A stretch of 64,000 nt of DNA from positions 124,001 to 188,000 of the IMG/VR virus record IMGVR_UViG_3300023184_004198; one strand, written 5' to 3'. Position numbers and translations under genes: made by a program. Below the pieces are notes generated by a model. That model was given only the letters and a program-made list of their open reading frames with translations. It ran no database searches and had not been told where the DNA came from. Shown here piece after piece: positions 2,176-56,064 of the stretch (its first letter is position 1; every line of letters starts with the position of its first letter).

Positions 2176-2465
2176 TGCCCGATATTTTAACTGGAATTTT
2201 TGATTGGATAAGAGATGACTATCGAACTAATCGCATTAGGTTTGTTGTTGAGCTCTTGGCTTGGGCTGTTAGTATTGGCTGCTCAATTACCATGGCACTC
2301 ACCGTACCAAATCCACCTCTTCTGTACATGTATCCTGTGTGGATCAGTGGTTGTGCCATGTATGCTTGGGCTGCCTGGACTCGAAAGAGTTTTGGCATGC
2401 TGGCCAACTACATCTTGTTGACCACAATAGATAGTGTTGGCCTAGCCCGGATGCTGTTAAACTGA
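2172..2465 (+). CDS. Small multi-pass membrane protein
   Basis: 97 aa, about 3 hydrophobic segments, ATGA overlap with the upstream gene. Confidence 0.7.
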   Translation: MMPDILTGIFDWIRDDYRTNRIRFVVELLAWAVSIGCSITMALTVPNPPLLYMYPVWISGCAMYAWAAWTRKSFGMLANYILLTTIDSVGLARMLLN

Positions 2466-2786
2466 TTTCTTTTTGGCAGGTGCTTTTTTAGCGGCTGCCG
2501 GCTTTTTAGCAGGTGCTTTTTTGGCAGCAGGCTTTTTGGCAGGTTTGGCAACTGGTACATTGTCTGCAGGGTTGCTGTTGGTCACAACTGGTGCAGGTTC
2601 TTCTACTCGGTCATCTGCTGACTTTCCAGGTGCAACATCAGCAGACTTGACGTGAATCTTGCCTTCAGACAATGTTTCACCAAACGGCCAAAGTTTGTCT
2701 TTTTCGGTGTCTTTCTTCTTTTGGCTCATGTCATACATCCAATATGCTGCCAATCCCAACACCGCCAATATGATAATAATTTCCAT
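2457..2786 (-). CDS. Membrane-anchored protein with Lys/Ala/Pro (AKKPA) tail
   Basis: N-terminal TM segment, repeated KKPAAKK; RBS and late hexamer (TATTTA 2806-2811 on +) upstream. Confidence 0.7.
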   Translation of the reverse strand: MEIIIILAVLGLAAYWMYDMSQKKKDTEKDKLWPFGETLSEGKIHVKSADVAPGKSADDRVEEPAPVVTNSNPADNVPVAKPAKKPAAKKAPAKKPAAAKKAPAKKKSV

Positions 2787-2855
2787 GTGTAAATCTCCTA
2801 TGAAATATTTAGTGACAGAATTAGTGAGTGTACACTAATTTGCCAGAAAACCTAG

Positions 2856-2891
2856 ATTTATGTTGCATTGCAACATAAATAATGCTACAAT
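2856..2891 (+). promoter_or_regulatory. Sigma70 promoter (TTGCAT-17-TACAAT) overlapped by a perfect 25-bp palindrome, candidate PhaR operator
   Basis: ATTTATGTTGCA-T-TGCAACATAAAT at 2856-2880; -35 at 2863-2868, -10 at 2886-2891. Confidence 0.7.
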
Positions 2892-2958
2892 AGAAACACA
2901 AGGCGCTGAATGGTTCGGGTCTTGTGCTCTAGAACTTGCTTAATTTAAGGAGAAAAAC

Positions 2959-3216
2959 ATGTTCAATTCTGTAATCGAAGCTGTACAAACAGCACAAAAA
3001 ACTTTTGTCAACACCGTTGTCACCAACGAAGAAATTGCCAAGCCCATGATCAAAATGATCGACAGCCAGTGCGATGCTGCCAAATTGACTGCCAAGGCTG
3101 TGTTGGATATCACCACTTCGATGGCTGCCGTGACCACTGAGAAAGTGCAGGAAGCAATGAAGTTTGACTGGACCAAATTTGCTGACGCATTTACACCAGC
3201 CACTGCTAAAAAGTAA
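2959..3216 (+). CDS. Phasin-like amphipathic helical protein
   Basis: 85 aa Ala/Thr/Lys-rich helical protein with strong AAGGAG RBS; resembles phage phasin-like proteins. Confidence 0.6.
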   Translation: MFNSVIEAVQTAQKTFVNTVVTNEEIAKPMIKMIDSQCDAAKLTAKAVLDITTSMAAVTTEKVQEAMKFDWTKFADAFTPATAKK

Positions 3217-3237
3217 TACTCAAGTAGTACTTTTAGA

Positions 3238-3262
3238 GACCCTGCCTTGTGCAGGGTTTTTC
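3238..3262 (+). terminator. Intrinsic terminator
   Basis: ACCCTGC-cttgt-GCAGGGT followed by a T tract. Confidence 0.8.
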
Positions 3263-3297
3263 TTGACCAAAATTTCCCAAACTGCTATAATACGAAC

Positions 3298-3405
3298 ATG
3301 AAAACAAAAAAACACAAAAAGAAAACCCTGGGTGAACTGCTTCGCAAGCGGTTAGGAATCAAACCAACTCTGGGCCAACTGCTTCGCAAGCGGTTGTCCA
3401 GTTGA
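3298..3405 (+). CDS. 35-aa basic peptide with internal duplication (not in ORF track)
   Basis: MKTKKHKKKTLGELLRKRLGIKPTLGQLLRKRLSS; TTGACC-17-TATAAT promoter ends 6 nt before the ATG. Confidence 0.55.
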   Translation: MKTKKHKKKTLGELLRKRLGIKPTLGQLLRKRLSS

Positions 3406-3436
3406 CCAATAAAGATCAATCTGCTATAATTACAAC

Positions 3437-3586
3437 ATGAAAACACTCAGCTTCACTATACAACTGCCAAAGCAACGCCGACGTGCGGTGGAGTTGTACA
3501 GTCGCGACACTCCGTTCAAGCCAAAGATTGAACGTGTGAAGACAGTGTACAATCGCAAAGTCAAACATCGGAACCGTGATGAATAA
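3437..3586 (+). CDS. ArfA-like small basic protein (not in ORF track)
   Basis: 49 aa ending LYSRDTPFKPKIERVKTVYNRKVKH; own promoter TTGACC (3402)-17-TATAAT (3425). Confidence 0.6.
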   Translation: MKTLSFTIQLPKQRRRAVELYSRDTPFKPKIERVKTVYNRKVKHRNRDE

Positions 3587-5322: not shown

Positions 5323-5895
5323 ATGAAAATGCCCACAGAAAACGAAACCATTGATTATGGCCAACAACTACATGAAAACGGCATGTATGTTTTCATGGGC
5401 GAGGTCAATGATGAAAACATCTTGCCAGTCATCGAGTGGATACTGCATGAAAACTATGTCAGCAAAAAGAAACGCAAAGAACTGTTGTTGATGATTTGCT
5501 CAGAAGGTGGTGACATGGGTGCCGCCTTTGCACTAATAGATGTCATGCAAAGCAGTACCATCCCAATCAAAACAGTGGGCCTGGGCATGATCGCCAGTGC
5601 TGGATTGTTGATTTTTATCTCAGGCAGCGCGGGTCGTAGAATACTCACTCCCAACACGTCTATATTGAGTCATCAGTTTTCCTGGATGAACGAAGGCAAA
5701 GCACACGAACTGTTTGCCACCATGCGAGAATTTGAACTCACACAACAACGCATGTTAAATCACTATAGATTGTGTACCGGACTCAGTGACGAAGAAATAA
5801 GACAACACCTGTTGCCACCCAATGATGTTTGGTTGAGTGCTACCGAAGCCATGAGCCTCAATGTGTGTGATCACATTTCGGCACTGTCACGCTGA
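5323..5895 (+). CDS. Divergent ClpP-like protease
   Basis: ICSEGG, GMIASAG (Ser) and ILSHQFS (His) motifs. Confidence 0.85.
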   Translation: MKMPTENETIDYGQQLHENGMYVFMGEVNDENILPVIEWILHENYVSKKKRKELLLMICSEGGDMGAAFALIDVMQSSTIPIKTVGLGMIASAGLLIFISGSAGRRILTPNTSILSHQFSWMNEGKAHELFATMREFELTQQRMLNHYRLCTGLSDEEIRQHLLPPNDVWLSATEAMSLNVCDHISALSR

Positions 5896-8194: not shown

Positions 8195-8245
8195 TGGTTT
8201 TCCGTGAGAAGTATGTTATACTTATGCAACCAACAAGGAGACCGT

Positions 8246-8836
8246 GTGCCAAATTTAGTACCCATAGTTTTAGAAAACACCGCCAAGGGCGAACGCAGTT
8301 ATGACATTTACAGCCGCTTGCTCAAAGATCGTGTGATCATGCTGGACACAGAAGTTACAGAACATTCAGCCAGTTTAATCGTGGCGCAGTTGTTGTTTCT
8401 AGAAGCAGACAATCCTGACAAAGACATCAGTCTATATATTAACAGCCCTGGTGGCGTGGTCACAGCAGGCATGGCCATTTATGATACCATGCAGTTTATC
8501 AAACCCGACGTGCATACCATTGTGATGGGACAAGCCTGTAGTATGGGTTCATTGCTGGCACAAGCAGGTGCGCCGGGCAAGCGTTTTATGTTGCCCAATG
8601 CCAGACACATGATTCATCAACCGTCAGGTGGCGCACGTGGACAAGCCACAGACATGCTGATTCAAGTGGAAGAAATTCTTGCTATGAAACGGAACTTGAC
8701 CGGCATCTATGTCAAGCACAACTCAGCAGATCGAACCTTTGAAGAACTCACAGCCGACATGGAACGTGACAACTTTATGTCAGCACAACAAGCAGTTGAC
8801 TACGGCCTGGCTGACAAGATTGTGCAGAACCGTTAA
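8246..8836 (+). CDS. clpP: ATP-dependent Clp protease proteolytic subunit
   Basis: [31 protein letters not shown]; GTG start after AAGGAG. Confidence 0.95.
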
Positions 8837-9303
8837 GTGGGCCAGACCCAGCCCATGTTTTCAAGTTGATGTATCCATGAAAACACAGGTGCGTTGAACT
8901 GCAACTGCCATCGACCATTCCACCCCAGGTGTGTTTCCCCGGCTTGAACAGGATTCGGCTGGGGATTTTGCTGACTGTACCAGGGTTCAGGAAACACTGG
9001 CTCATAAGTGGCCAGCCAGTTGAAACGTGGCACATGTATGCTGTTGATTCTAATGGCACCAATGGTGATGTACTTGTCTAGCCCAAGGTGTGGTATGCAG
9101 TCTGAATCTTGTTTGTTCACAAAATCAACGATCACACTGTGTGGACCAGCAGTCAACAGTTGATCAAATCTCAAAGTAGTTGGCCGGCTTAGTTGCATGC
9201 GATCAACTGCATGATCAACGCCGTACATGATTTCAGGCACACTGCTGTGATATGTGGGCATGACATCTATTTCAATTTCAGTTTGATATTTTTTTGTATC
9301 CAT
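8833..9303 (-). CDS. Hypothetical protein coupled to the radical SAM gene
   Basis: Overlaps the 3' end of the radical SAM ORF; start at MDTKK. Confidence 0.65.
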
Positions 9304-10639
9304 ATTGTTCCAAGAAGTCAGTCCATTCTGGATAGTAGTCTCTGGCATCTAACTCGCAGTGGTGATCCCATTTGTTGAGCCAGCCAACCAGTTCTGTTTT
9401 GAGTGCTTCGGCATTGGGCAGTTCGGGCACTTGAATCATCTTGTACACACTGTTGAGTTCGTTGTACAGGTTAAGGGCATTCTTGCCATACTCTCTGCTT
9501 TGTGGCATGTCTGGATGTTGGTCTTGTTTGATATATGTACTCAATTTGTCAAGCACACGCTCGTATTCGGCAAAATAACTTTGTCTAATGTCCAAGGGCA
9601 ATGCGGCCGCCCGCAAATACGCAGGATTCCAGCAGGTGTTGTTTTCTGTGATGATGTTGCTGTCAAACATCCACTCCGTGAGTGCAGGAAATGTGGGCAC
9701 AGTGAGTGCAGTGATGGTGGGCTTCAAACACACGCAGAATGTTTCACTTTGATGCGACAAGAATGAACGGATGTTGTTCCAGTACAGTTCTTTGTCCAGA
9801 CCCTGGCGAATGTAAAAATTGTTATCTGACACAGACTCAATGCTGATGTCAATGTCTGCTCGGAAGAATCGAGCAAACTTTTCAGCAATCTCTCGACTGT
9901 ATATGGTGCCGTTGGAGATCAAACTCACAGCAAAGTCAGTGCGATCATGCTCAATAAAGAAATCCAAGAACTGTTCCAGTCTGGGACTCATAAAAGGCTC
10001 GCCGCCCATGAAGTGAACACTGCGCAGGTTCTTCATGCCCAGCAGTTCGTTCAGGAACCGTTGCCAAACTTCTTCATCATCCATCCAGTTCATTCTGGTA
10101 TGGTAGTCTTCTTTGCTGAGTATGCCCCAGATTTTGTATTTGGTTGCAATCTGTGTGCTGTAACTGGGGTTGCAATGTTTACAGTATAGGTTACATTCAT
10201 TGCCCATGTCAATATGCAGGTCCACAGGCATGCCATCGTAGTGCTCGTCCACGGCTTGACCAGATTGTTCACTGGTGAAAATATCATGGTGTGGGCTTTG
10301 TTCAAAACTTTGTTGAAAGTTTTGTTGGGTAAAGATAACACTGCGCCAATTGTGAGTGTTGCGATAACTGTCATTGCCATACTGTTCGTCTTGATAGCAG
10401 CCGGCACATTCAGCCAAAGGTTGGTCGCCCAGCATGGCAGCACGATAACGTTTCATTTTTTCACTGCGATACCACTCACGGATTGACGTGGTTTTGATAT
10501 TGGCTTTTACTTGTTCGGGTTGTTTGGCATAGCCATCGAACACAGGTGCTCGTTCACTGCAACACAGACCATAACTGCCGTCGTGGTAAAGTTGCATGTG
10601 GAACCAAGGCACATTACAGAATATTTTGGGATTTGGCAT
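9278..10639 (-). CDS. Radical SAM protein with N-terminal SPASM/Twitch-like domain
   Basis: CNLYCKHC, FMGGEP; N-terminal C..PW..CC..C..C; late hexamer 6 nt upstream. Confidence 0.9.
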   Translation of the reverse strand: MPNPKIFCNVPWFHMQLYHDGSYGLCCSERAPVFDGYAKQPEQVKANIKTTSIREWYRSEKMKRYRAAMLGDQPLAECAGCYQDEQYGNDSYRNTHNWRSVIFTQQNFQQSFEQSPHHDIFTSEQSGQAVDEHYDGMPVDLHIDMGNECNLYCKHCNPSYSTQIATKYKIWGILSKEDYHTRMNWMDDEEVWQRFLNELLGMKNLRSVHFMGGEPFMSPRLEQFLDFFIEHDRTDFAVSLISNGTIYSREIAEKFARFFRADIDISIESVSDNNFYIRQGLDKELYWNNIRSFLSHQSETFCVCLKPTITALTVPTFPALTEWMFDSNIITENNTCWNPAYLRAAALPLDIRQSYFAEYERVLDKLSTYIKQDQHPDMPQSREYGKNALNLYNELNSVYKMIQVPELPNAEALKTELVGWLNKWDHHCELDARDYYPEWTDFLEQYGYKKISN

Positions 10640-18387: not shown

Positions 18388-19179
18388 ATGAGGTATTTAA
18401 TATTGACCCTTTTGTTTGTTTTCAGCACTGCTCATGCACGTGAGCCCAGTGTCTACGTTTACAATGAAACCACAGACCGTGTGGAATACCAACGCAACTC
18501 AACAGAGTATCGTCCCATTGCCAGCATCACCAAGCTGATGACTGCCATGGTGGCCTTAGATCACAGCAAAGACCTGTTTCGTCAGCTGCCACTCAATACC
18601 ACGGTAAAAAGCAACTTGCTACGTGGCAACTACACTAGGCAAGAACTGTTCACGGCCATGCTGGTGCGAAGTGACAATGCAGCCGCAGAAACACTGGCTG
18701 CAGACTATCCTGGTGGTCGTAAAGAGTTTGTATGGCGCATGAATCAACAGGCCCGGGAATGGGGTATCAATGCTGTATTCCGTGACCCCACTGGCTTGGA
18801 CGCACACAACATGGCCACTGCTGGTGATGTTGGCACCATGGCTGGATATGCCGCGGGCTATTGGGTCATACGTGAAGCCAGTGTGAAAAAGACCGTGGCG
18901 TTTGAACGCAAGTTCAAAAAGAAATTACGCAAGATTCAACTCAACAATACCAACCGCCCATTGTTGATGGAGTTTGACGAAATCATTGCTTCAAAAACTG
19001 GATTTACCAATCCTGCAGGATATTGTGTTGCACTTGTGGTAGAACACAAAAAACAACGGCGAGTGATTGTGGTCTTGGGCGAACGAAACAAAAGCCGTAG
19101 AATAGACACTGTACAGGATATCATGTACAATCATGTGCTGGACCAAAATTTACAGGATCCCAAGTACATCAATAACTAA
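18388..19179 (+). CDS. D-alanyl-D-alanine carboxypeptidase/endopeptidase (peptidase S11)
   Basis: Signal peptide; SITK (SxxK), SDN (SxN) and KTG motifs. Confidence 0.92.
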   Translation: MRYLILTLLFVFSTAHAREPSVYVYNETTDRVEYQRNSTEYRPIASITKLMTAMVALDHSKDLFRQLPLNTTVKSNLLRGNYTRQELFTAMLVRSDNAAAETLAADYPGGRKEFVWRMNQQAREWGINAVFRDPTGLDAHNMATAGDVGTMAGYAAGYWVIREASVKKTVAFERKFKKKLRKIQLNNTNRPLLMEFDEIIASKTGFTNPAGYCVALVVEHKKQRRVIVVLGERNKSRRIDTVQDIMYNHVLDQNLQDPKYINN

Positions 19180-22326: not shown

Positions 22327-22560
22327 ATGAGCTCACTACATCTCAATGCTAGACCTTGGGTAGTATTTGATCCTGCCAATGACGACCATCGTCGTTATTA
22401 CTATGATTTTGTATCCACTGGTACATGGGGTCGATGTCCGGTGCGTTTTGTAGTGCCTGATGCACACGGTGACTTGATCTCAATGATTCAACGCAGCCTG
22501 ATCAAGTGGTACGTGATCAACGAGTTCAAACCCAAACCCAAGCGCCGACGCACTGCATGA
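22327..22560 (+). CDS. Hypothetical protein
   Basis: RPWVVFDPANDDHRR..WGRCPVRF. Confidence 0.7.
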   Translation: MSSLHLNARPWVVFDPANDDHRRYYYDFVSTGTWGRCPVRFVVPDAHGDLISMIQRSLIKWYVINEFKPKPKRRRTA

Positions 22561-23891
22561 CAGATCTAACTCAAGCCACAGCCACAGAATTATTCCAACT
22601 ATACCAATCTGGTGCTGTGAGTCCTGTTGCTGTGGCCGAGCAAGTGTTGTCCAAAATCGAACGTGTAAATCCTGTGATCAATGCGTTTTGTTTTGTAGAT
22701 CCTGAGACTACAATGATTCAAGCACAGGATAGCGAACAACGCTGGCAACAAAATTGTCCACTGGGACCACTGGACGGAATACCTATAGCAGTCAAAGATT
22801 CAATACTTACACACGGCTGGCCCACTCTTCATGCAAGTCAAGCCATTGATCCTGATCAGTCTTGGGCAGAAGATGCACCAGCAGTGGCAAGATTACGTGA
22901 AGCAGGTGCAGTATTTGTGGGCAAAACTACAATGAGTGAATTTGGATTCAATGCACATGATTCAAATTCGTTACTGTATGGCAAGGTACACAATCCATGG
23001 AACCTTGCAAATTCTCCAGGTGGCAGCTCGGGAGGATCCGCAGTGGCAGTGGCCGCTGGTCTGGTTCCTATTGCACTGGCTTCGGATCTTGGAGGTAGCA
23101 TTGCAGTGCCAAGTGCTTGGTGTGGCGTGGTTGGCATCAAACCAAGCACCGGACTGGTGTCACAGTTTCCTACGGATGTTCTTGAACTTACCACTGTGGG
23201 ACTTATGGCAAGATCGTGTCAGGATCTTTCAACAGGCATGAACATAATCTCAAGATCCGATTGGCGTGACAGCACTGCATTTGCTGGCGGAAGTTTGGTG
23301 TTTGATTTAAATTCTCCATACACTTTAAAAAACAAAAAAATAGCATGCCTTGCACCCATTGACCAGTCAAACAATGTTGTTCAATATCTAATTGATCAAT
23401 CAGCCATGATCGATTTTGTTCAAATTGATGCCGGTGTCGCAACAGAAGTGTTTGCCAAATTACTAGATCCAAAATTATTACAACAGTGGTCAGATATCCC
23501 TGAATCTTTGCGGCAAAAAACTGGTCGTAAAATACAACAACTGGCGGTGATTGCACACAAAAAAGAAAAAACGTATTCTCATCTCTTAGAGCGCCACAAG
23601 TTAATTGCACACATGCGCAGATTTATGGAATCTTATGATTTGATTATTTGTCCTGCAACTGTAGACAGTGCAGACAACGCTAATAACATTGTGTCAGATG
23701 TTTCGCCTATGTCGGTATTTTTTTGTATGACCAAACAACCCACAGTGACTATGCCCATTGGTGTAGATTCAGATGGTGCCCCAATGGCTATAATGATAGC
23801 CGGTGCAGTATACAAAGATCACGATCTCATGTGTGCGGCGCACATGATTCAATCTGCTTTTCCCATTCCTGCTTGTCCGGTAATACTGTAG
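22557..23891 (+). CDS. Amidase signature family enzyme (GatA/AtzE-like)
   Basis: GPLDGIPIAVKD, PGGSSGGS, SDLGGSI (Lys-Ser-Ser triad). Confidence 0.92.
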   Translation: MTDLTQATATELFQLYQSGAVSPVAVAEQVLSKIERVNPVINAFCFVDPETTMIQAQDSEQRWQQNCPLGPLDGIPIAVKDSILTHGWPTLHASQAIDPDQSWAEDAPAVARLREAGAVFVGKTTMSEFGFNAHDSNSLLYGKVHNPWNLANSPGGSSGGSAVAVAAGLVPIALASDLGGSIAVPSAWCGVVGIKPSTGLVSQFPTDVLELTTVGLMARSCQDLSTGMNIISRSDWRDSTAFAGGSLVFDLNSPYTLKNKKIACLAPIDQSNNVVQYLIDQSAMIDFVQIDAGVATEVFAKLLDPKLLQQWSDIPESLRQKTGRKIQQLAVIAHKKEKTYSHLLERHKLIAHMRRFMESYDLIICPATVDSADNANNIVSDVSPMSVFFCMTKQPTVTMPIGVDSDGAPMAIMIAGAVYKDHDLMCAAHMIQSAFPIPACPVIL

Positions 23892-27800: not shown

Positions 27801-28289
27801 ATGTCAATATCAGCAACACCAATTCCCACGCTAACATTAGATGAAGTTAATGAGTTGACCACTAGTATAACCAGTGGTATAGGAACCGACACTATCACCT
27901 ACAGTCCAATCTGGAGCACAACAGGCACAGTGGTACCAGGTTATGGTGCTGCCATTGGTAATGGTGGAACTGGATACACCTACACAACCAATACAACCGG
28001 TCCTTGGATTGCCACTGGTAGTAGCCCTGGTACTTTAAGTGTCGAACAAAGCGGTACCATTGATCTGCGAGGCGAAAACCCTGACATCAAGATCAACGGC
28101 AAAAGCATGGTGGCCTGGATGGAAAAGGTAGAGGAACGACTAAACATCCTCACACCTAATCCTGAGCTGGAAAAAGAATGGGACGATTTGCGCAGACTGG
28201 GTGAACGCTATAGAGCATTGGAAAAGAAGTGTAAGGAAAAAGCCCAGATGTGGGAAGCCTTGAAAAAAGTACAACCTAAACAACCATGA
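27801..28289 (+). CDS. Thr/Gly-rich protein with C-terminal coiled coil
   Basis: ADI-like GENPDIKING..IEERL-type segment, PNPELEKEW. Confidence 0.7.
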   Translation: MSISATPIPTLTLDEVNELTTSITSGIGTDTITYSPIWSTTGTVVPGYGAAIGNGGTGYTYTTNTTGPWIATGSSPGTLSVEQSGTIDLRGENPDIKINGKSMVAWMEKVEERLNILTPNPELEKEWDDLRRLGERYRALEKKCKEKAQMWEALKKVQPKQP

Positions 28290-29074
28290 TACCCAAGCAA
28301 ATGACACCCAAACAACGCATCAAACACATCTCCAAATGGATCCGAGACTATGCCCGCAAGGCCAAGGTAGATACTTTGGTAGTAGGCATTTCGGGCGGTA
28401 TTGATTCATCAGTTGTCAGTGCCTTGTGTGCAGAAACTGGCCTAAAAACTGTTGTGGTACAAATGCCTATTCGGCAGAATCGCAAATTGGACAATCTAAG
28501 TTCAGCACAAGCAGGCTGGCTGTTGGAGCACTATCCCAACAACGTCACGCACATGAGCATGGATCTAACTCCAGTGTTCACTGCATTTGAGAAAAAAGTT
28601 TCTCCTTTTGGAGACAGTGAATTAGCGTTTGCTAATAGCAGAGCCAGATTGCGCATGATGACCCTGTATCAAATTGCACAAAGTCATGGTGGTATTGTGG
28701 TGGGCACAGGCAACCGAGTGGAAGACTTTGGCGTGGGATTCTTTACCAAGTATGGTGATGGCGGTGTGGATATTTCCCCCATTGGCGACTGCATGAAAAC
28801 TGAAGTGTGGGACCTGGGCCGCGAACTGGGCCTGCTGAAAGAAATCATTGATGCACCACCCACAGACGGCTTGTGGGCTGATGGTCGCAACGACGAAGAT
28901 CAGTTAGGCATGACTTATCCTGAACTGGAAAAGGCCATGTTGCAAGACACTTACTCAGGCATTCGCGAGTATGCCACTGCGCCAGAAAAGAAGTTACTCA
29001 AACGTTATCGTGAGATACGTGCAAGAAATCTGCACAAGATGACACCTATTCCTGTTTGCACAATACCTCATTAA
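28286..29074 (+). CDS. nadE: NH3-dependent NAD+ synthetase
   Basis: VVGISGGIDS, ANSRARLRM, VGTGN, FFTKYGDG, PPTDGLW..DE. Confidence 0.95.
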   Translation: MIPKQMTPKQRIKHISKWIRDYARKAKVDTLVVGISGGIDSSVVSALCAETGLKTVVVQMPIRQNRKLDNLSSAQAGWLLEHYPNNVTHMSMDLTPVFTAFEKKVSPFGDSELAFANSRARLRMMTLYQIAQSHGGIVVGTGNRVEDFGVGFFTKYGDGGVDISPIGDCMKTEVWDLGRELGLLKEIIDAPPTDGLWADGRNDEDQLGMTYPELEKAMLQDTYSGIREYATAPEKKLLKRYREIRARNLHKMTPIPVCTIPH

Positions 29075-33884: not shown

Positions 33885-34433
33885 ATGGAACTGAGAGATC
33901 ACATTAACCTAGTAGAGGCCAGTACTAGACCGGCCAAGTTGGAAACCACTCCCTTGCCTTATGGTCCCAAAGACTTGGCACCGGTGATGAGTGCTGACAC
34001 AATTAATTATCATTTTGAACACTTGGCCAAGGGCTATGCAAAACGTTATAATGCTGGAGAAGGCAATGCAGATTTCAATCGTGCTGGCAGTTTTTTACAC
34101 AATAAGTTTTTCCCTCAGCTTCGCGCTCCCAAAGGTGCCAACAGACCCCGTGGTGCTGTACTTGCCTTGATTGAAGAGCATTTCAAAACCTACGAAGACT
34201 TCAAAGAGGCTGTTAAAGAAAAGGCCATGAAGATACAGGGTTCAGGTTGGGTGTATTTGAGCACTGGTGGTGAAATCAAAACCATTGCCAACCATGCTGT
34301 GCGCACAGATATCTGTGTGCTCATTGACTGGTGGGAACACGCCTGGGCATTGGATTATCAAAGCGACAAAGAACGCTATCTAGATAACATCTGGAAAATA
34401 ATAGATTGGGACGTCTGTAACGAACGTCTGTAA
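33885..34433 (+). CDS. sod: Fe/Mn superoxide dismutase with N-terminal extension
   Basis: LPY..LAPVMS..YHFEH, FLHNKFF, GSGW, DWWEHAW. Confidence 0.92.
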   Translation: MELRDHINLVEASTRPAKLETTPLPYGPKDLAPVMSADTINYHFEHLAKGYAKRYNAGEGNADFNRAGSFLHNKFFPQLRAPKGANRPRGAVLALIEEHFKTYEDFKEAVKEKAMKIQGSGWVYLSTGGEIKTIANHAVRTDICVLIDWWEHAWALDYQSDKERYLDNIWKIIDWDVCNERL

Positions 34434-34706: not shown

Positions 34707-35001
34707 CAAACTAAAAGAACTTGTTGCTGAAGAAGGCAACCCTGAACTAAAACTACGAGTATTTGTACAAGGTGGAGGATGTTCAGGATTCAGTTATGGT
34801 TTTACATTTGATGAAGCTCGAAACGAAGATGATTTTGATTTCTCTTACGACACTGTGCAAGTTGTTGTAGATGCCATGAGCATGCAGTATCTACAAGGAT
34901 CAGAGATTGATTACAAAGAAGATATGATGGGCGCCAGCTTTGTGATCAACAATCCGCAAGCAGTCAGCACTTGCGGATGTGGATCAAGTTTTAGCATTTA
35001 A
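34681..35001 (+). CDS. erpA: A-type Fe-S carrier (HesB/IscA/ErpA)
   Basis: [28 protein letters not shown]. Confidence 0.92.
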
Positions 35002-37775
35002 ACTGTTTCACCATTTTCGCGGATGAACTCAGTGTCTCCGCCTACAATATCAAACACACGCATCCAGAAGCGTTCCACTGGTCGGAATATCCAACCCCAG
35101 CGGTTTTCGCCGTAATAGTATTTGCCATAGCATACCAAGGGATCTGCAAAAGTCTTTGTGACCAAGAACTTGAACACACGTGACTCACGCATGAGTGGCA
35201 CCAGTACTTCTGCCAGTCGGTAGTAGCCTCTGCGGTTTCGACCAGTCATCTTCTCATCACGGTATCTGCGTACCACTGAATCCATGGTGCCATCACCGTA
35301 GCGAGCTTCAAGCATGATGAAGCAGCAACCACCACCACCACCGCCGCCGCCACCTGCACTGCAACCACTGCCGGCTGAACTGCTGCAACTGCCTGCACTG
35401 CCGTCGCCACCAAATCCTGTTTGTCCCTTGTTATGAACCACAAGGTTGTTGGCTATGTAAGTGTTGTTGCCATCTAGTTTGAAATTATAGATTACTTGTT
35501 GTTGATCTTGATCGCTGTATTCTTCAATTGAGTCGATTACAACCCCCACGCCGTCTTCAGTTTCGACTACATCGCCCACGGCATATTTGCCCACGGTCAT
35601 TTTATACTTGGCGTAGGTCATTACAGGGTCAAAAGATCGCCAACCATGGCCACGTATCCATACTGGGTGATCGCTGGTCATAAATGGTGTGCTGCCGTTG
35701 AATGCCATCATGGTGGCACCGGTTTCGCCCAAAGTGGGTCGCAAAAACTCCAGCACGGTGTTGTGTGCGCCATCCATACCCAGCACAACTTCCCCTAGCG
35801 CAACATCTTCGATATTTTTGCGTGAACCGTCGGCCATGGTAATTTGTGTACCAGCCACAAAGCAACAACAAATACGAACAGTGTCATACACTTTTGGTGG
35901 GGGAGGAGGCAACGCTCTCAAATCCGGGGGTCTAGATACTCTGGCCCAATCATCTGATTGAGATATAAAATAGGGCACAAAAGTTCCAACCACCGGTTCC
36001 CATACCCCAGCTTCGTTTACATACATGCCGTCAATTTGTTTCCACTCGCCATCTACATTAACAAAAATAGTTTTAACTTCTTGCCAACCGCCGGCAGTTC
36101 TCACTCTAGGACCAAAACTGTTGAATATGAACACAGCGCCACCGTTGCCACCTTGCACCGAACCTGGCAGTCCACCTTGTCCTACTCCGGGCAACAGGTT
36201 ATGATATGGACCAGTAAAAGCCACACCCGCACCATTGGGACTTAATGCTGTGCCAGTGGCAATTGGATTTAGATAACTTACTCCTACACCACCGGCTTGT
36301 CCGTAAGCATCACCTTCGCTACTGTAACCATTTTTTCCAGCGCCGCCAGGACCGCCAGGACCGCCTGCCCCTCCACCGCCACCATCTTTGTAGAAATCGC
36401 CTTGATTTTGGCCAACTTGTCCATTGGAAATTCCAGCGGCAGTCTGTCCACGTGGTCCTGGTGCATTGGATTCAGAAATACCAGTATCACTGTTGCCAGC
36501 ACCACCGCCACCAGCGCCACCTACTGCAACTGCTATCAATGTTTCATTTGGTGTTTGTGGATTTAGTACCAATGTGGTACAACCGCCAGACCCACCACCA
36601 CCACCTGAACTGCCCACAGGACCTGCCAGTCCACCAGTGGCGCCTGACCAACTTTTACTAATGACAATGGCCACACCTGCACTTGGCAAAGCTGTTTGAC
36701 TAAATGAAGCAAAGAATGAAATTGTGTGATAGCCTTGACTTACTGTAACATTTGTAGTGTATGCTGTGCTGTATGAATCAGAACCCGGTGTGGTATACAC
36801 CACAACACCATCAATGCTGAGTGTGGCTGTGTTGGCAGCAGCCATCTCAACTTGATAAGACCCAGTGTAAGGAAAATACACATTGGCATAGGTTCTAGCG
36901 CATGAACTGGCTTTGAAATTTTGTTCCCACATACCAAAGTCCAACATCAAATTGCTGTAAATATTGTCAGGCTCTGTGTCAGGATTTGGCACGTATAAAG
37001 GCGGACTGGCTACAGCACTTCTAGTATCAAATACATTTCTCACCAAACCATATCCACCCAACCCTGCATTGCCAGTTGTGGCTATGGTAAGTCCTACTCC
37101 AAATACGCCGTATGTGGCTCCAACATTGGCATTGGCAAGAATACGTATGGTATGATTACCCGGAGTTATAGTGCGTACAAATTGCACACCGCCTGACTCT
37201 TGTGTCTTCCAACTGTCAACACCGGATTCCAACAATACTTCGCCGTCAAGAAAAACTGTGGCTTGGTAATACGCTGCTAATCTAAAAACATAAGTGATAG
37301 AAAAAGGAAAAAATACAGTAAATGATTGATCAAAGTTTAAAGTATTGGCTAAACTGGTGGTACTGCCATCCAATGCTGTGCCAGTGTTCCACACACCAGT
37401 GTCATTCAAAAATTTTGACCAGCGAGCAACCGTGGTAGCACTGGCACGAGGCAGTGCTGTGGTTCTTCCAATAGGAACAGCGGTGCGTGTGTTAAAAATA
37501 CTGTCTTCGTAAGAATTGGCTATGCTACTGTTTCGGCCACTGCCACCAGCAGCGCCCACTGCAATCTCAATCACATCACCAGGATTAACAGTAAACGACG
37601 CTGATACATATCCACCACCAGAGCCTGAGCCACCTTGACGACTCCCGTCGCTGCCGCCGGAACCTCCGCCTGCACCCCAGAGATAAGCCTGTACAGTTTG
37701 TGAATATCCGGCAGCAGGCAAAGTCAGGGTTTGCCGAGCGTTGATCATGCTCAAAGGTCTAATTAGTGTGGTCAT
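34998..37775 (-). CDS. Gly-rich fibre/adhesin with two PA14-like modules, Hint domain and C-terminal CFI-box domain
   Basis: WGAGGG repeats; CFVAGT...VVHN (Hint, 35430-35864); GGCCFIM C-terminal domain. Confidence 0.8.
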
Positions 37776-50520: not shown

Positions 50521-50807
50521 GATACTTACTTTTAACCTATTACAAAAAACCCGACGGCAAGATTGACGAAGTCATGGCCGTGGCCAAAAACTTGAAAAAA
50601 CGCGACATTGCAACTTGCAACGTCATACTTGACTTTAAAAAATTAGAAGTGATCAAAGCCAGTATGTCGGGCACAGATGTACCAAAAGATTTTGACCGCA
50701 TTGCAGGGTATTACCATCAACACTATGCTGCCACCATAGAGCGATTGTTCAACGAGAATGGCTACGAAGTTGAAGTCAACAAACCCCAACAAGATGCGGC
50801 TGGATGA
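50517..50807 (+). CDS. Hypothetical protein
   Basis: MRYLLLTYYKKPDGKIDE, coupled. Confidence 0.7.
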   Translation: MRYLLLTYYKKPDGKIDEVMAVAKNLKKRDIATCNVILDFKKLEVIKASMSGTDVPKDFDRIAGYYHQHYAATIERLFNENGYEVEVNKPQQDAAG

Positions 50808-51732
50808 TTTAGATGGTTTACACATTGAACTGACCAATCTGTGTACGTTGAAATGTCCAGGTTGCCTGAGAACACAGTTGATTAAAAAATGGCCTCGCCA
50901 TTGGAAAAATTACAGTTTAGATTTGGATGTTGTTGCAAAATTCTTAGACGTTGATTTGCAGGGCAAAACCATTACCTTGTGTGGCAACACAGGCGATTCT
51001 ATATATCATCCCAAGTTTCATGACTTTGTGGCATATTTTAAAAATCGCGGTGCCCAGCTTCGAGTGTTTACCAATGGTAGTTATCGCAATCAGTCTTGGT
51101 GGGACACCACTGTTTCTTATTTGGACAGCGCAGATACAGTGATTTTTAGCGTGGATGGTCTGCCAGAAAATTTTACACAATATCGAATCAATGCAGATTG
51201 GCAATCAATTTTGATTGGCATGCAGGCTTGTATACAAGCATCTTGCAAAACTGTGTGGAAATACATTCCGTTCAATTTCAATGAAAATGACATTGCTGCC
51301 GCAGAACAACTCAGTCAAAACATGGGCTTTGATGTTTTTAAAATTGAACAAAGCAGCAGATTTGACGAACGCAATGGAGTAGATTATCAGTTGATGTCTT
51401 TCATGCCCAGCGGCAATCAACACATAGATGCAAGATATCAACATCAAGCAGAATGGAAAAACTCAAGGCTCACAATCCAGATTGATCCTGTTTGCAATGA
51501 TCAAAGAAGTCATTACATTTCGGCCAACGGGTTTTACAGTCCCTGTTGTTTTGTATCTGACTATGCATTTTATTACAAGACAGAATTTGGTAAAAACAAA
51601 AAAATGTACAACATTGCAGACCGTACACTCACCGGGTTGTTTCAACAAACAGAATTCAATGAGTTTTACAATAATTTACACGATCACGCAGTTTGTCAAT
51701 TTAGTTGTCCCGCTACACAGGAAAGAAAATGA
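50794..51732 (+). CDS. Radical SAM protein with C-terminal Twitch-like domain
   Basis: CTLKCPGC, CGNTGD, FTNG, SVDG, PCC. Confidence 0.9.
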   Translation: MRLDDLDGLHIELTNLCTLKCPGCLRTQLIKKWPRHWKNYSLDLDVVAKFLDVDLQGKTITLCGNTGDSIYHPKFHDFVAYFKNRGAQLRVFTNGSYRNQSWWDTTVSYLDSADTVIFSVDGLPENFTQYRINADWQSILIGMQACIQASCKTVWKYIPFNFNENDIAAAEQLSQNMGFDVFKIEQSSRFDERNGVDYQLMSFMPSGNQHIDARYQHQAEWKNSRLTIQIDPVCNDQRSHYISANGFYSPCCFVSDYAFYYKTEFGKNKKMYNIADRTLTGLFQQTEFNEFYNNLHDHAVCQFSCPATQERK

Positions 51733-52310
51733 AAAAGAAATTAATATTAGTTGATGCAGATGGTGTATTGTTAGACTGGGAGTTTGCGTTCTCAGTGTGG
51801 ATGGAAGAACACGGGTTTGCCAAACAGGAAGGACATCAGTTTGAATACGATATTGGTGTTCGCTACGGCATTGATCGAGAGCAGAGTTTCAAACTGATCA
51901 AAATGTTCAACGAGTCGGCTGCAATTGGATTTTTGCCACCGCTGCGTGATGCCATGTACTATGTGAAACGCCTGCACGAAGAGCATGGCTATGTGTTTCA
52001 CTGCATCACCAGTTTGAGTACAGACGTCAATGCTGGTAGATTGAGAGAAATGAACCTGCGTAAGTTGTTTGGCAAGACTGCATTTACAGGTGTCACATGT
52101 TTGGCCACTGGTGCAGATAAACACTCGGCACTGGAGCCTTATACCAATTCGGGTCTGTGGTGGATTGAAGACAAGCCCGAAAATGCTGACCTAGGCTATG
52201 ATCTGGGTTTGCAGAGCATATTAATGGAACACGGGCACAACATGAATCATGAGTGCCCGTATCCTGTGGTTAAAAATTGGCGGGAAATCTACGCAATAAT
52301 CACCTCCTAA
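51729..52310 (+). CDS. HAD-family 5'(3')-nucleotidase-like
   Basis: DADGVLLDW, ITSL, WIEDK. Confidence 0.85.
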   Translation: MKKKLILVDADGVLLDWEFAFSVWMEEHGFAKQEGHQFEYDIGVRYGIDREQSFKLIKMFNESAAIGFLPPLRDAMYYVKRLHEEHGYVFHCITSLSTDVNAGRLREMNLRKLFGKTAFTGVTCLATGADKHSALEPYTNSGLWWIEDKPENADLGYDLGLQSILMEHGHNMNHECPYPVVKNWREIYAIITS

Positions 52311-53041
52311 GCGGCGTAGAGTTTCAACACTGACCCAATGATGCTGTGGCGTTGCACGTCACGAGTTTGCATTTCGCACACAGCAATTCCCGCCACTGGT
52401 GTTTGACCCAGTTTAGCGCATAGATCGTACAAGCCATTGTCCCCTCTAGCACGATCGGCTTGTTCCACATCTCCTGTAATCACTATCTTAGAGTTCTGTC
52501 CAATGCGTGTCATCAGCATTTTTACTTGTGCTGGTGTGGCATTTTGCATTTCGTCTGCGATGATCCACGAATTTTTGAAGGTTCGGCCTCTCATGTATGC
52601 CAGAGGAGATATTTCCAGAACTTGATCTTCAATCATGGCCACGATGTCTTGTGGCCTATAGTATTCACGCATGACATCCAATAAGGGACGAGTCCAAGGT
52701 TCCATTTTGGCAACTAAATTGCCGGGCAAAAAGCCATGGCTTTCGCCCTCTACACCCACTGCGGGTCTTGTCAGCACTATTCGATCGCATACTCCTTCTC
52801 TTAGATTTTTAACAGCAGCCAGCATCGCCAGGTACGTTTTACCTGTTCCAGCGGGACCTGCTGTGACGACAATGTGTTGATCAGGGTCCTGTAGTGCCAT
52901 GACCAGGCGCTCTTGATTTCGTGTTCGAGGGATCAAGTCTATGCGGCGAGGTTGTGCCCGCGGCGCTTGGTTAAAGTTAATGGTGTTTTCTACTGCCTGA
53001 TTCATACGTTTTTGTGCTTTTGTTGCTCGTTGTCTACTCAA
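52307..53041 (-). CDS. phoH: PhoH-like ATPase
   Basis: GPAGTGKT, RPAV, GFLPG, YMRGRT, DEMQN, TGDVEQ. Confidence 0.95.
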   Translation of the reverse strand: MSRQRATKAQKRMNQAVENTINFNQAPRAQPRRIDLIPRTRNQERLVMALQDPDQHIVVTAGPAGTGKTYLAMLAAVKNLREGVCDRIVLTRPAVGVEGESHGFLPGNLVAKMEPWTRPLLDVMREYYRPQDIVAMIEDQVLEISPLAYMRGRTFKNSWIIADEMQNATPAQVKMLMTRIGQNSKIVITGDVEQADRARGDNGLYDLCAKLGQTPVAGIAVCEMQTRDVQRHSIIGSVLKLYAA

Positions 53042-55666: not shown

Positions 55667-56064
55667 AACGCATACTGATCATGGGTTTGAGTGGTACAGG
55701 CAAGACCACACTGGCTAAGTCACTGCAAACCAAATTGAACTCTGTACATTTTAATGCAGATCAAGTTAGAGGTATGTTCAATGACTGGGACTTCAGTGCA
55801 GAAGGACGCATACGTCAAAGTCAACGCATGCGAGATCTTGCTGATGCAGCCCAGGCTGACTATGTGATTGCTGATTTTATTGCACCATTGAATCGCATGC
55901 GAGTAATATTTGACGCTGATTTTACCATATGGATGGACACTGTACAGCGCAGTCGGTTTGCAGACACTGACCAAATGTTTGTACCTCCTACTAGTTGGGA
56001 ATATGACATGAGGATCACCTCATTTGACTACAATATAGATAATATCTTAAAGGAACTACCATGA
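55663..56064 (+). CDS. Short adenylylsulfate kinase (CysC)-like protein
   Basis: GLSGTGKTT, NADQVR, DFIAP. Confidence 0.75.
   Translation: MKRILIMGLSGTGKTTLAKSLQTKLNSVHFNADQVRGMFNDWDFSAEGRIRQSQRMRDLADAAQADYVIADFIAPLNRMRVIFDADFTIWMDTVQRSRFADTDQMFVPPTSWEYDMRITSFDYNIDNILKELP

Follow-up and report, generated by a model that had tools for sequence, protein, structure and literature searches.

PhaR (AniA) is the bacterial sensor of stored bioplastic (PHB) and represses phasin promoters such as those of phaP1/phaP3 in Cupriavidus necator, phaP1/phaP2 in Sinorhizobium meliloti and phaP1/4/5 in Bradyrhizobium diazoefficiens. The PhaR sites are palindromic boxes with the core TGCRNYGCA, a single free central base and AT-rich arms; they overlap or flank the -35, and phaP promoters often have two of them. 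Short two-hairpin ROSE-like RNA thermometers (Rfam RF02523, ROSE_3), as described for the Pseudomonas ibpA leaders (PMC3669281), start with a stable hairpin I followed by a weak hairpin II in which U(U/C)GCU, with a bulged G, pairs imperfectly with the Shine-Dalgarno (SD) and the AUG is left free. They are driven by a sigma-32 promoter, and known ROSE elements precede small heat-shock or ABC-transporter genes. PhaM of C. necator and PhaF of Pseudomonas putida are granule-associated proteins with lysine-rich histone-like tails, the PAKKA tail tethering granules to the nucleoid (PMC9049629). In phages, auxiliary genes and switches that read host signals place a phage gene under the operator of a host regulator, so that host physiology sets its expression. 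The papers searched describe no phage gene under PhaR control, no phage phasin and no ROSE element in a phage, although this absence is not proof that none exists, and in that sense the combination described here is new for a phage.

We analysed a window of 64,000 nucleotides (64 kb; positions 124,001 to 188,000 of IMG/VR record IMGVR_UViG_3300023184_004198) from an uncultured freshwater jumbo phage (212.6-kb contig) and found a cassette in which a PhaR-type palindrome lies over a promoter, followed by a 62-nt ROSE-like leader, a gene for a small amphipathic protein and a terminator that makes the gene a monocistronic unit (Table 1). The preliminary description had reported the perfect palindrome over the -35, the promoter, the leader hairpin and the 85-aa amphipathic protein, and we confirm all of these at the positions given there. 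The interpretation offered with them, a phasin-like protein made only when the host accumulates PHB so that the phage could sense or mobilise granule carbon, is supported in part: the operator holds by every sequence test available, phasin membership is not shown, and the leader adds a second predicted gate that had been missed.

Table 1. Features of the cassette and its surroundings, in positions of the 64-kb window
Position	Strand	Feature	Sequence and remarks
2457-2786	-	Divergent neighbour gene	109 aa; AGGAGA 8 nt before the ATG; shares the 172-bp intergenic region with the cassette
2821-2838		Second conserved palindrome	TTAGTG-N6-CACTAA; centre about 68 nt upstream of the predicted transcription start
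2856-2880		PhaR (AniA)-type operator	ATTTATGTTGCA-T-TGCAACATAAAT; perfect 12-1-12 palindrome (12-nt arms, 100% complementary); core TGCATTGCA at 2864-2872; centred about 30 nt upstream of the predicted start; covers the -35 and the spacer up to the extended -10
2863-2868	+	-35-like hexamer	TTGCAT; 3 of 6 to consensus; in the left arm of the operator; 17-nt spacer to TACAAT
2883-2891	+	Extended -10	TGCTACAAT (TGcTACAAT); TACAAT at 2886-2891
about 2897-2899	+	Predicted transcription start	
2897-2926	+	ROSE-like leader, hairpin I	CACAAG/CTTGTG; stable 5'-terminal stem-loop
2935-2952	+	ROSE-like leader, hairpin II	anti-SD UUGCU at 2936-2940 with G2938 bulged, paired with the SD AAGGAG at 2947-2952; AUG at 2959 unpaired
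2959-3216	+	Gene for the amphipathic protein	85 aa, 9.3 kDa
3235-3264	+	Intrinsic terminator	stem CCCTGC/GCAGGG (core 3240-3245 / 3251-3256) followed by TTTTTCTT; MFE -15.3 kcal/mol with the extended stem
3263-3291		Next promoter	TTGACC-17-TATAAT

The palindrome is the only one in the window with arms of 12 or more and a spacer of 0-3, and one of 40 locally shuffled windows reached a 12-nt arm. The half-site is not repeated elsewhere in the window. A simple promoter scan did not list this promoter, because TTGCAT matches only 3 of 6 positions of TTGACA, and the simple terminator scan did not list the terminator, which was read directly from the sequence. The -35-like hexamer nevertheless stands at the same distance from the -10 as the TTGACC of an 11/12-consensus promoter family in the window, and the extended -10 belongs to a 13-member promoter family, with TGCTAYAAT found 13 times against 1.6 expected, 12 of them on the + strand. 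In relatives it is conserved as TGnTACAAT or TATAAT. In three lake metatranscriptomes, contigs of relatives cover about 2885-3200 while 2576-2883 and 3192-3280 are empty; these are contigs, DNA carry-over cannot be excluded and no 5' end was mapped.

To estimate how closely the palindrome resembles PhaR sites, we compared it with the published motifs of three species. It matches the S. meliloti motif WNWDDNYGCRNYGCRNHHWNW at 21/21 positions (PMC12542648) and the C. necator motif YTKNTGCRNYGCANMAR at 15/17, differing only at the two outermost positions and thus within that paper's criterion of 3 or fewer mismatches (PMC12849132). It matches the B. diazoefficiens motif TGCRNYGCASMA at 11/12, and its 12-mer at 2864-2875, TGCATTGCAACA, is identical to the site listed for the PhaR-repressed gene bsr4236 (PMC6201568), while the S. 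meliloti site ATGTTGCATTGCAGCAT (SMc02856) differs by one base. On a matrix built from 16 gel-shift-validated S. meliloti sites the palindrome scores 24.3 bits, at the top of the 10.0-25.3 bits that the true sites reach in leave-one-out scoring. The next best site in the window scores 11.1, and 0 of 200 shuffles reach 24.3. The degenerate motif is not rare in itself, with 0.6 matches to the 21-mer expected per window, and part of the core (TTGC) doubles as the -35. The region upstream of pHG1 phaP2, tried as a positive control for the matrix, has no high-scoring box and is not informative. The position over the -35 and spacer is where PhaR sites repress phaP promoters (PMC12849132, PMC12542648, PMC6201568), although here there is a single box.

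Loss of the palindrome upstream of homologues had been named in advance as an outcome that would count against the reading, and we found the opposite. A box of 14 bits or more is present at the same promoter position in 75 of 109 distinct upstream regions (about 70 %), against 0.26% of 3,082 control windows, and this includes a subfamily only about 40% identical in protein. The box is also present upstream of a two-gene variant, the operon-type loci carrying it in front of an extra paralogue. About a quarter of loci carry discrete variants that score poorly, namely the right halves TGCCAGGTAAAT and a centre longer by 1 nt, and a few loci have no box. Among 58 distinct boxes, positions +/-2, 3 and 7 never vary, position 4 does so only on the right side, and the centre is free (A11 C18 G13 T16). 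Positions +/-1 vary independently as R and Y (A/T 29, A/C 12, G/T 9, G/C 6), and the core is kept with 15 different central triplets in relatives, 13 of which obey R-N-Y. This is the degeneracy of the PhaR consensus and not hairpin complementarity, and it echoes the C. necator report that positions 1-4 and 7 are the conserved ones (PMC12849132). Taken together, the PhaR-type operator is well supported in silico; binding by PhaR and release by PHB granules were not assayed, and the host, hence its possession of phaR, is not known. No PhaR, PhaC or PhaZ domain was found in the 48 window ORFs scanned.

The leader hairpin pointed out in the preliminary description is hairpin I of a two-hairpin ROSE-like leader whose hairpin II would occlude the SD. 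The leader matches the two-hairpin architecture described for Pseudomonas ibpA (PMC3669281), and shares with such thermometers a 5'UTR of about 62 nt. The Rfam ROSE_3 model aligns over its full length, including the hairpin I loop region GCyGAA...CGGGUC and the consensus ACUcGCuGA...UCaGgAG at hairpin II, and scores 36.8 bits (E 6.3e-4). It is the only Rfam match in the 64 kb at E <= 0.05, but it lies below the gathering score of 43 bits; relatives score 36.5 and 34 bits and none of the 20 loci scanned at the gathering score reach it. Across relatives 97.1% of cells are paired against 88.3% in shuffles, 8 of 16 pairs show changes on both sides, and the covariation score is 0.414 against 0.234, reached by 0 of 500 shuffles. 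Hairpin I has 10 pairs, 6 of them with compensatory changes on both sides and 98.8% of cells paired, and hairpin II has 94% of cells paired, with U/C variation exactly at the U(U/C)GCU position. A model built from the leader found no second copy in the window.

We addressed temperature dependence with an energy model only. The predicted dG of hairpin II is -3.1, -1.8, -0.4 and +0.5 kcal/mol at 10, 20, 30 and 37 C, and the hairpin is marginal in all 28 distinct versions, with medians of -4.5, -3.1, -1.6 and -0.9 kcal/mol at the same temperatures. A partition-function estimate of SD accessibility did not change with temperature and was discarded as unreliable, so that these calculations do not settle whether warming frees the SD. 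Hairpin II is AU-rich and predicted to melt at about 20-30 C, which would suit lake temperatures but is untested. The element differs from the ibpA leaders in being driven by an extended -10 sigma-70 promoter with an operator, and in preceding a phage gene whose product has no alpha-crystallin, Hsp20 or other chaperone domain.

The gene encodes a protein of a phage-only family, with 135 close homologues and 130 remote cluster representatives. An AF2 model (pLDDT 79) predicts helices at 2-20, 24-68 and 71-77. The hydrophobic moment is 0.49 for helix 2-20 and 0.35 for helix 24-68, each exceeded by 0.25% or fewer of shuffles, and the protein is in this respect small, amphipathic and predominantly alpha-helical as phasins are. 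A match to phasin families by profile or structure had been set beforehand as a condition for the phasin reading, and it was not obtained. The protein has no Pfam, NCBIfam or PHROG hit, and none to a phasin model even at E <= 1. Phasin_2 (PF09361) is the only Pfam family hit by more than one member, with 6 of 130 at E <= 0.01, always in the same register, and three more hits from subfamily B, but scores of 14.9-22.3 bits stay below the cut-off of 24.9. TIGR01841 (8 of 130) and TIGR01985 (3 of 130) head the NCBIfam list with best E-values of 1e-3 to 2e-3, and one member gives a weak Perilipin hit. A comparison by hhalign with a single PhaP2 was negative, and with a Cupriavidus PhaP2 profile it gave probabilities of 0.2-0.8%. 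Five fold searches covering PDB, AFDB clusters and Swiss-Prot (Foldseek) and the Atlas returned only generic helical hairpins, and a PDB sequence search only a designed helical repeat protein at E 0.04. The PhaP2 profile was narrow, as the homologue search behind it returned close relatives only, and helical folds match poorly, which makes this weak negative evidence; conversely, an Ala/Lys/Thr-rich amphipathic helix can imitate phasin profiles by composition alone. The name phasin remains a lead, and binding to the surface of PHA granules was not examined. The only recurrent protein-family signal, in two independent libraries, is phasin.

The divergent neighbour has an N-terminal hydrophobic helix and a C-terminal Pro/Ala/Lys tail of PAKK/AAKK-type repeats. 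Its homologues occupy the same divergent position in 24 loci of both subfamilies, and co-regulation with the cassette is possible. The tail resembles those described for PhaM and PhaF (PMC9049629), but the protein has no Pfam family and no detectable sequence homology to them, the likeness is compositional and untested, and such tails are low-complexity and common; the same stretch attracted very deep unrelated metatranscriptome contigs. The second palindrome has one exact copy in the window and is exact in 51 of 145 fetched loci, once each and always inside the cassette. Its spacer sequence varies freely and no T-run follows it on either strand. It shows that another, unidentified factor is involved.

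We also looked for relatives and hosts. DNA and protein searches of 50,697 GenBank phage records with the locus, the window protein and a remote relative found nothing, so no cultured relative is available. A scan of a genome collection returned the family in only two metagenome-assembled genomes, one Haliscomenobacter and one Polynucleobacter, which are probably mis-binned phage DNA and give only a weak host hint; the family is thus phage-only rather than a captured host phaP. Polynucleobacter, one candidate host lineage, has a PHA synthase and a phasin (PMC7522526). A TctC/Bug gene tried as a host marker was not informative, its best plasmid hits being only 25-29% identical. A search along the genome beyond the window returned a near-identical 60-kb contig and was not continued, leaving 148 kb uninspected. 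Two other readings of the promoter region were rejected: a sigma-54 reading of TTGCA, by eye, because there is no GG element 10-11 nt upstream, and a divergent promoter using the palindrome as a face-to-face -35, because no -10 is present on the minus strand and nothing is conserved there.

Sequence and comparison establish a self-contained cassette with an extended -10 sigma-70 promoter whose weak -35 and spacer lie inside a 25-bp palindrome, a two-hairpin leader whose second, marginally stable hairpin pairs UUGCU with the SD, an amphipathic helical protein and an intrinsic terminator, the whole arrangement being conserved by descent across a phage clade whose copies of the protein have diverged to about 40% identity. 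What follows is inference, since no binding, melting or localisation has been measured. We hypothesize that the host's PhaR dimer binds the palindrome and blocks RNA polymerase while the cell has no growing PHB granules, and that when PHB is being made PhaR moves to the granule surface and the gene is transcribed. The ROSE-like leader would then limit translation at low temperature and open on warming or heat stress. Expression would therefore be gated twice, and production only upon PHB accumulation, as first proposed, is at best half of the logic. The product, a phasin-like amphipathic protein, would coat or remodel PHB granules to the phage's benefit, for example through access of depolymerase, chaperone-like action or keeping PhaR titrated, and the divergent neighbour may belong to the same module. 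PhaP overproduction has been linked to heat tolerance (PMC6201568). We favour this explanation over each alternative, but only tentatively.

Alternatively, the palindrome may be the operator of another dimeric regulator, either phage-encoded (a temporal switch) or a different host factor, and the protein a helical phage protein unrelated to PHB, such as an assembly or scaffold factor or an anti-defence or host-takeover factor. The likeness to PhaR boxes and to phasins would then be coincidence helped by composition. Phage promoters with palindromic operators are usually controlled by phage proteins, the protein fails every phasin threshold and profile test, the family is phage-only, a second unexplained palindrome is present, and the uninspected part of the genome could encode such a regulator. 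The discrete operator variants recur in both subfamilies, a pattern that would fit co-evolution with a phage-encoded binder. However, a phage regulator usually has several sites whereas only one exists in the 64 kb, and it is the best PhaR-matrix hit by 13 bits. The box also agrees with the PhaR consensus sequences of three species at every conserved position and varies only where they are degenerate, and phasin is the only protein-family signal that recurs. We consider this alternative unlikely, though it survives better than the others.

Less likely still, the cassette may be primarily a stress or heat module in which the ROSE-like thermometer is the main control and the operator, whoever binds it, only sets the timing. 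The product would be a small chaperone-like or holdase protein, or a membrane- or aggregate-binding protein, made when the infected cell is warm or stressed. The leader is the best-supported RNA feature in the window, ROSE elements classically gate small heat-shock proteins (PMC3669281), and two ClpP genes lie nearby. Phasins themselves have reported chaperone-like effects (PMC6201568), so this view overlaps with the favoured one. Against it, the protein lacks a chaperone domain, thermometer function is predicted only, with hairpin II marginal already at 20-30 C, and a PhaR-type box kept at the promoter across the clade is not explained.

That the palindrome acts as a DNA cruciform or as an RNA stem terminating or stabilising a minus-strand transcript is very unlikely: a consensus scan listed it as terminator-like on the minus strand (11 pairs, followed by CTAGGTTTTC) and in locus L003 the innermost pair is compensated from A-T to G-C, but across the 58 distinct boxes mismatched A/C and G/T combinations at the innermost positions are as common as independence predicts, the arms are broken in many loci while the GC core is kept, the T-run is poor and not conserved, the palindrome lies upstream of the predicted start on the + strand, and the minus-strand gene lies downstream of it so that it would terminate nothing.

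It is conceivable, although we regard it as doubtful, that a whole clade of freshwater jumbo phages keeps a vertically inherited cassette wiring a phage-made, phasin-like protein of the host's PHB granules, and possibly the divergently transcribed membrane protein with its PAKK tail, to two host signals at once, PHB-granule status read through the host repressor PhaR and temperature read through a ROSE-type RNA thermometer. If true, this would be the first virus-encoded PHB-granule protein, the first viral promoter under PhaR control and the first ROSE thermometer in a virus, and it would imply that phages sense and remodel the host's stored carbon during infection.

PHB is a major carbon and energy store of aquatic and soil proteobacteria, and whether phages sense or exploit it is essentially unexplored. 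The cassette offers a compact and directly testable case of about 400 bp, with a promoter that looks like a perfect PhaR box, a leader that looks like a thermometer tuned to lake temperatures and a small protein that may bind granules. It is present in more than 100 distinct metagenomic phage contigs and is represented in lake metatranscriptomes, and any function would therefore be ecologically widespread. The conserved second palindrome points to yet another unknown input. The cassette would extend ROSE thermometers and the PhaR regulon beyond cellular genomes and would provide a natural two-input switch responding to metabolite store and temperature together.

The window is part of a 212.6-kb uncultured viral contig from freshwater metagenomes, of which it covers positions about 124,001-188,000. 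It has 45% G+C and contains no tRNA genes. The observation in the preliminary description holds: the perfect palindrome, the promoter, the stem-loop in the leader and the 85-codon ORF all read in the sequence as claimed. A GC-rich stem followed by a T-run (-15.3 kcal/mol), which was not mentioned there, lies downstream of the ORF, and since the next promoter begins at 3263 the gene is a monocistronic unit. The palindrome is the only one in the window with arms of 12 or more, while one of 40 locally shuffled windows reached that length. The coordinates of the cassette and of the other features that we observed are collected in the table.

Positions of the cassette elements and of other features (window coordinates unless a locus is named; handles beginning with L denote other loci or contigs)
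Feature	Position	Strand
Divergent neighbour gene, PAKK/AAKK-repeat tail	2457-2786; L009:2208-2552	- (both)
Conserved palindrome TTAGTG-N6-CACTAA	2821-2838	
Perfect 12-1-12 palindrome, PhaR-type box	2856-2880	
TTGCAT, followed by a 17-nt spacer	2863-2868	
TACAAT, preceded by TG	2886-2891	
Rfam ROSE_3 (RF02523) match	2897-2964	
Stem-loop, ROSE-like hairpin I	2897-2926	
ROSE-like hairpin II	2935-2952	
AAGGAG	2947-2952	
85-codon ATG ORF	2959-3216	
GC-rich stem plus T-run	3240-3264	
Extra 101-aa paralogue in one lineage	L009:2703-3008 (also L005, L008, L037, L043, L045, L051-L054)	
Discrete operator variants: right halves TGCCAGGTAAAT and TGCCGCATAAAT, and one extra central base (ATGCTGCGACCGCACAT)	L004, L013, L020, L027, L034, L041, L044, L046, L079, L132; L073, L075, L076, L080; L081, L083, L114, L125, L133, L135, L139	
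Near-consensus promoters TTGACC-17-TATAAT with TG extension	3263-3291, 3402-3430, 11273, 20836, 23929, 24296, 24830, 26371, 30387 and others	
30-nt direct repeat, inside the 35-codon ORF 3298-3405	3324-3395	
49-aa very basic protein	3437-3586	
Two ClpP-family protease genes	5323-5895 and 8204-8836	
Host-like metabolic genes: TctC/Bug solute receptor, Fe/Mn superoxide dismutase, NAD synthase, amidase, PhoH, D-Ala-D-Ala carboxypeptidase and two radical-SAM/SPASM proteins; in a near-identical contig, just left of the window, a Porin_4 porin, a solute-binding protein and UDP-glucose dehydrogenase	56061-57026, 33885-34433, 28286-29074, 22506-23891, 52307-53041 (-), 18388-19179, 9278-10639 (-), 50758-51732; L146:646-1800 (-)	- where marked
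925-aa ORF, Hint / homing-endonuclease-associated domain at residues about 638-737	34998-37775	-

The window holds a family of near-consensus promoters of the form TTGACC-17-TATAAT with a TG extension, and TGCTAYAAT occurs 13 times against 1.6 expected, 12 times on the + strand. Several of these promoters are followed by a shared ACATATTGTAACAAAAGGAG leader, while the two at 3263 and 3402 have an ATG 6 nt after the -10, suggesting leaderless mRNAs. The promoter of the 85-codon gene keeps the extended -10 but has, in place of TTGACC, the hexamer TTGCAT, which is the left arm of the palindrome. The weak -35 is therefore the price of the operator.

The encoded protein is 9.3 kDa with a pI of 6.2 and is rich in Ala, Thr and Lys. 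The predicted structure (pLDDT 79) has helices at residues 2-20, 24-68 and 71-77, and the helices are significantly amphipathic. We found 135 close homologues (66-100% identity), all metagenomic, on contigs of up to 354 kb, and a profile search of 1.84 billion cluster representatives returned 130 remote relatives of 50-195 aa, most of them 65-110 aa. A second large subfamily, which we call B, is about 90 aa long and about 40% identical and lies on contigs of 235-378 kb. Gene order around the gene (UvdE, small basic proteins, lipoproteins and ClpP) is shared by both subfamilies, and they are therefore orthologues within one phage clade. No cultured phage in GenBank has the gene and, among 185,579 species genomes, only two MAG contigs carry it. 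The family is phage-only.

To ask whether this protein is a phasin, we compared it with phasin families by sequence model and by structure, the comparisons on which the phasin reading had been staked at the outset, and membership is not shown. The window protein has no Pfam hit even at E <= 1. Phasin_2 is nevertheless the only Pfam family matched by more than one of the 130 remote relatives: six match at E <= 0.01 (a seventh long member only at E 0.016) with scores up to 22.3 bits against a cut-off of 24.9, always in the same register, and three subfamily B members repeat the match at 14.9-18 bits. In NCBIfam the two phasin models head the list, and one member also touches Perilipin. Against this, hhalign against a real PhaP2 profile, built from the annotated pHG1 gene and its relatives, gives a probability below 1%, and five structure searches return only generic helical hairpins. 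Phasin is therefore the nearest known family, but composition alone could produce that signal.

The evidence that the palindrome is a PhaR operator is much stronger than could be known from the sequence alone. PhaR motifs derived from footprints, gel shifts or regulons have been published as YTKNTGCRNYGCANMAR for C. necator (PMC12849132), WNWDDNYGCRNYGCRNHHWNW for S. meliloti (PMC12542648) and TGCRNYGCASMA for B. diazoefficiens (PMC6201568), and the window site fits them 15/17, 21/21 and 11/12 respectively. Its 12-mer at 2864-2875 is letter for letter the site listed for the PhaR-repressed gene bsr4236. Because the degenerate 21-mer is not rare in itself (0.6 expected per window), we built a weight matrix from the 16 S. 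meliloti sites that shifted efficiently with His6-PhaR. The phage site scores 24.3 bits on this matrix, compared to 10.0-25.3 for the true sites in leave-one-out scoring and 11.1 for the next best 21-mer in the 64-kb window. None of 200 shuffled windows reaches 24.3.

Loss of the palindrome upstream of homologues had been set in advance as a result that would count against the operator, and we addressed this by examining 109 distinct upstream regions from 62 loci of subfamily A and 80 of subfamily B. Of these, 75 carry a box of 14 bits or more at the same distance from the -10, while only 0.26% of 3,082 control windows from the same loci do. The loci that seemed to lack a promoter carry the full cassette about 400 nt upstream, where it stands in front of an extra, divergent 101-aa paralogue without Pfam hit, placed before the 85/87-aa gene to form, in one lineage, a two-gene operon. 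Among 58 distinct boxes, positions 2, 3 and 7 from the centre never vary, position 4 does so only on the right side (A 50, C 8), and the central base is free. Positions +/-1 vary independently as purine and pyrimidine, with the mismatched combinations A/C and G/T as frequent as independence predicts. That pattern is what a protein reading YGCRNYGCR would tolerate and not what a nucleic-acid hairpin would require, and it also echoes the C. necator observation that positions 1-4 and 7 are the conserved ones (PMC12849132). There are exceptions, for which we have no explanation: the right halves TGCCAGGTAAAT or TGCCGCATAAAT recur in both subfamilies, as do the versions with one extra central base (ATGCTGCGACCGCACAT), which are found in both orientations, and a handful of loci have an unrelated promoter. 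The recurrence of these discrete variants is not simple decay and may reflect other hosts or another binder.

We next compared the window with all 4,227 Rfam families, and the only match at E <= 0.05 is ROSE_3, which falls on the leader with 36.8 bits over the full model length (E 6.3e-4), below the gathering score of 43. Relatives from both subfamilies reach 36.5 and 34 bits, and none of 20 reaches the gathering score. The alignment shows that the leader hairpin of the preliminary description is hairpin I, including the loop-region letters GCyGAA...CGGGUC, and reveals a second hairpin in which UUGCU with a bulged G pairs with the Shine-Dalgarno and leaves the AUG free. This is the architecture described for the short two-hairpin ROSE-like thermometers of Pseudomonas ibpA, with 61-62-nt leaders, a U(U/C)GCU motif and a stable first hairpin (PMC3669281). 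On 52 distinct leaders, 97.1% of cells pair, compared to 88.3% in shuffles and 31-57% when partners are slid, 8 of 16 pairs change on both sides, and the covariation score exceeds all 500 shuffles. The one variable anti-SD position toggles U/C, exactly as in U(U/C)GCU. Hairpin II is predicted to be marginal, with -3.1, -1.8, -0.4 and +0.5 kcal/mol at 10, 20, 30 and 37 C, and is similarly marginal in all 28 versions. Such values would suit lake temperatures, although they come from an energy model only. A model built from these leaders finds no second copy in the window.

Just upstream of the box, a second palindrome with a free spacer and no T-run is exact in 51 of 145 loci, always once per locus and at the same position. 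It looks like another protein site, whose binder and role are unknown. The divergent gene encodes a hydrophobic N-terminus in front of its repeat tail and is syntenic in both subfamilies. The tail recalls the PAKKA and histone-like tails of the granule proteins PhaM and PhaF (PMC9049629), a resemblance of composition only.

In three lake metatranscriptomes, contigs of relatives cover about 2885-3200 while the intergenic region and the terminator region are empty, and a fourth library of uncertain kind covers everything. The repeat region of the divergent gene (2444-2575) attracts very deep, unrelated metatranscriptome contigs, so depth there is meaningless. The coverage of the cassette is consistent with the predicted transcript, but it does not map its ends or exclude DNA carry-over.

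Downstream of the cassette, the 30-nt direct repeat is present in two copies 42 nt apart (90% identical), each holding a short inverted repeat (CTGCTTCG/CAAGCGG), and might be a structured RNA rather than coding sequence. The 49-aa basic protein is conserved in 45 loci with a weak PHROG 6310 hit, and its C-terminal K/R-rich stretch recalls the ribosome-rescue factor ArfA, a likeness that we did not test. Of the two ClpP-family genes, which lie 2.3 kb apart, one is divergent (93 bits) and one is close to consensus (265 bits). The Hint domain in the 925-aa ORF suggests an intein inside a large phage gene.

The host is unknown. Hints of a proteobacterial, perhaps betaproteobacterial, host are the TctC/Bug-family receptor, the Porin_4 porin in the near-identical contig and one relative binned with a Polynucleobacter MAG. 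None of the 48 window ORFs scanned has a PhaR, PhaC or PhaZ domain, and 148 kb of the genome was not inspected. Polynucleobacter has a PHA synthase and a phasin (PMC7522526).

Alternatively, the box may be read by a different, possibly phage-encoded, regulator and the protein may be unrelated to PHB, which we consider unlikely but the strongest of the rival explanations. A stress module in which the thermometer dominates is less likely still. A purely structural hairpin can be all but dismissed.

PhaR-phasin circuits and ROSE thermometers are already known in bacteria. In the literature that we searched, no paper describes either of them in a phage or the two combined on one gene. The interpretation in the preliminary description is supported in part, being right about the operator, unproven about the phasin and incomplete about the leader.

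Taken together, the comparisons demonstrate the anatomy of the cassette and its conservation, whereas PhaR binding, melting of the leader and granule binding are what we infer from them. We think it probable that a PhaR-type protein binds the box and very likely that a structured leader occludes the SD. That the leader works as a thermometer is only slightly more likely than not, and that the protein binds granules is possible but doubtful. The mechanism that we favour, tentative when taken as a whole chain, is that a host PhaR dimer sits on the box and blocks the promoter until nascent PHB granules titrate it. The transcript would start at about 2898 with a protective hairpin, and translation would be held down at low temperature by the SD-occluding hairpin and released on warming. 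The amphipathic product would then act at the granule surface.
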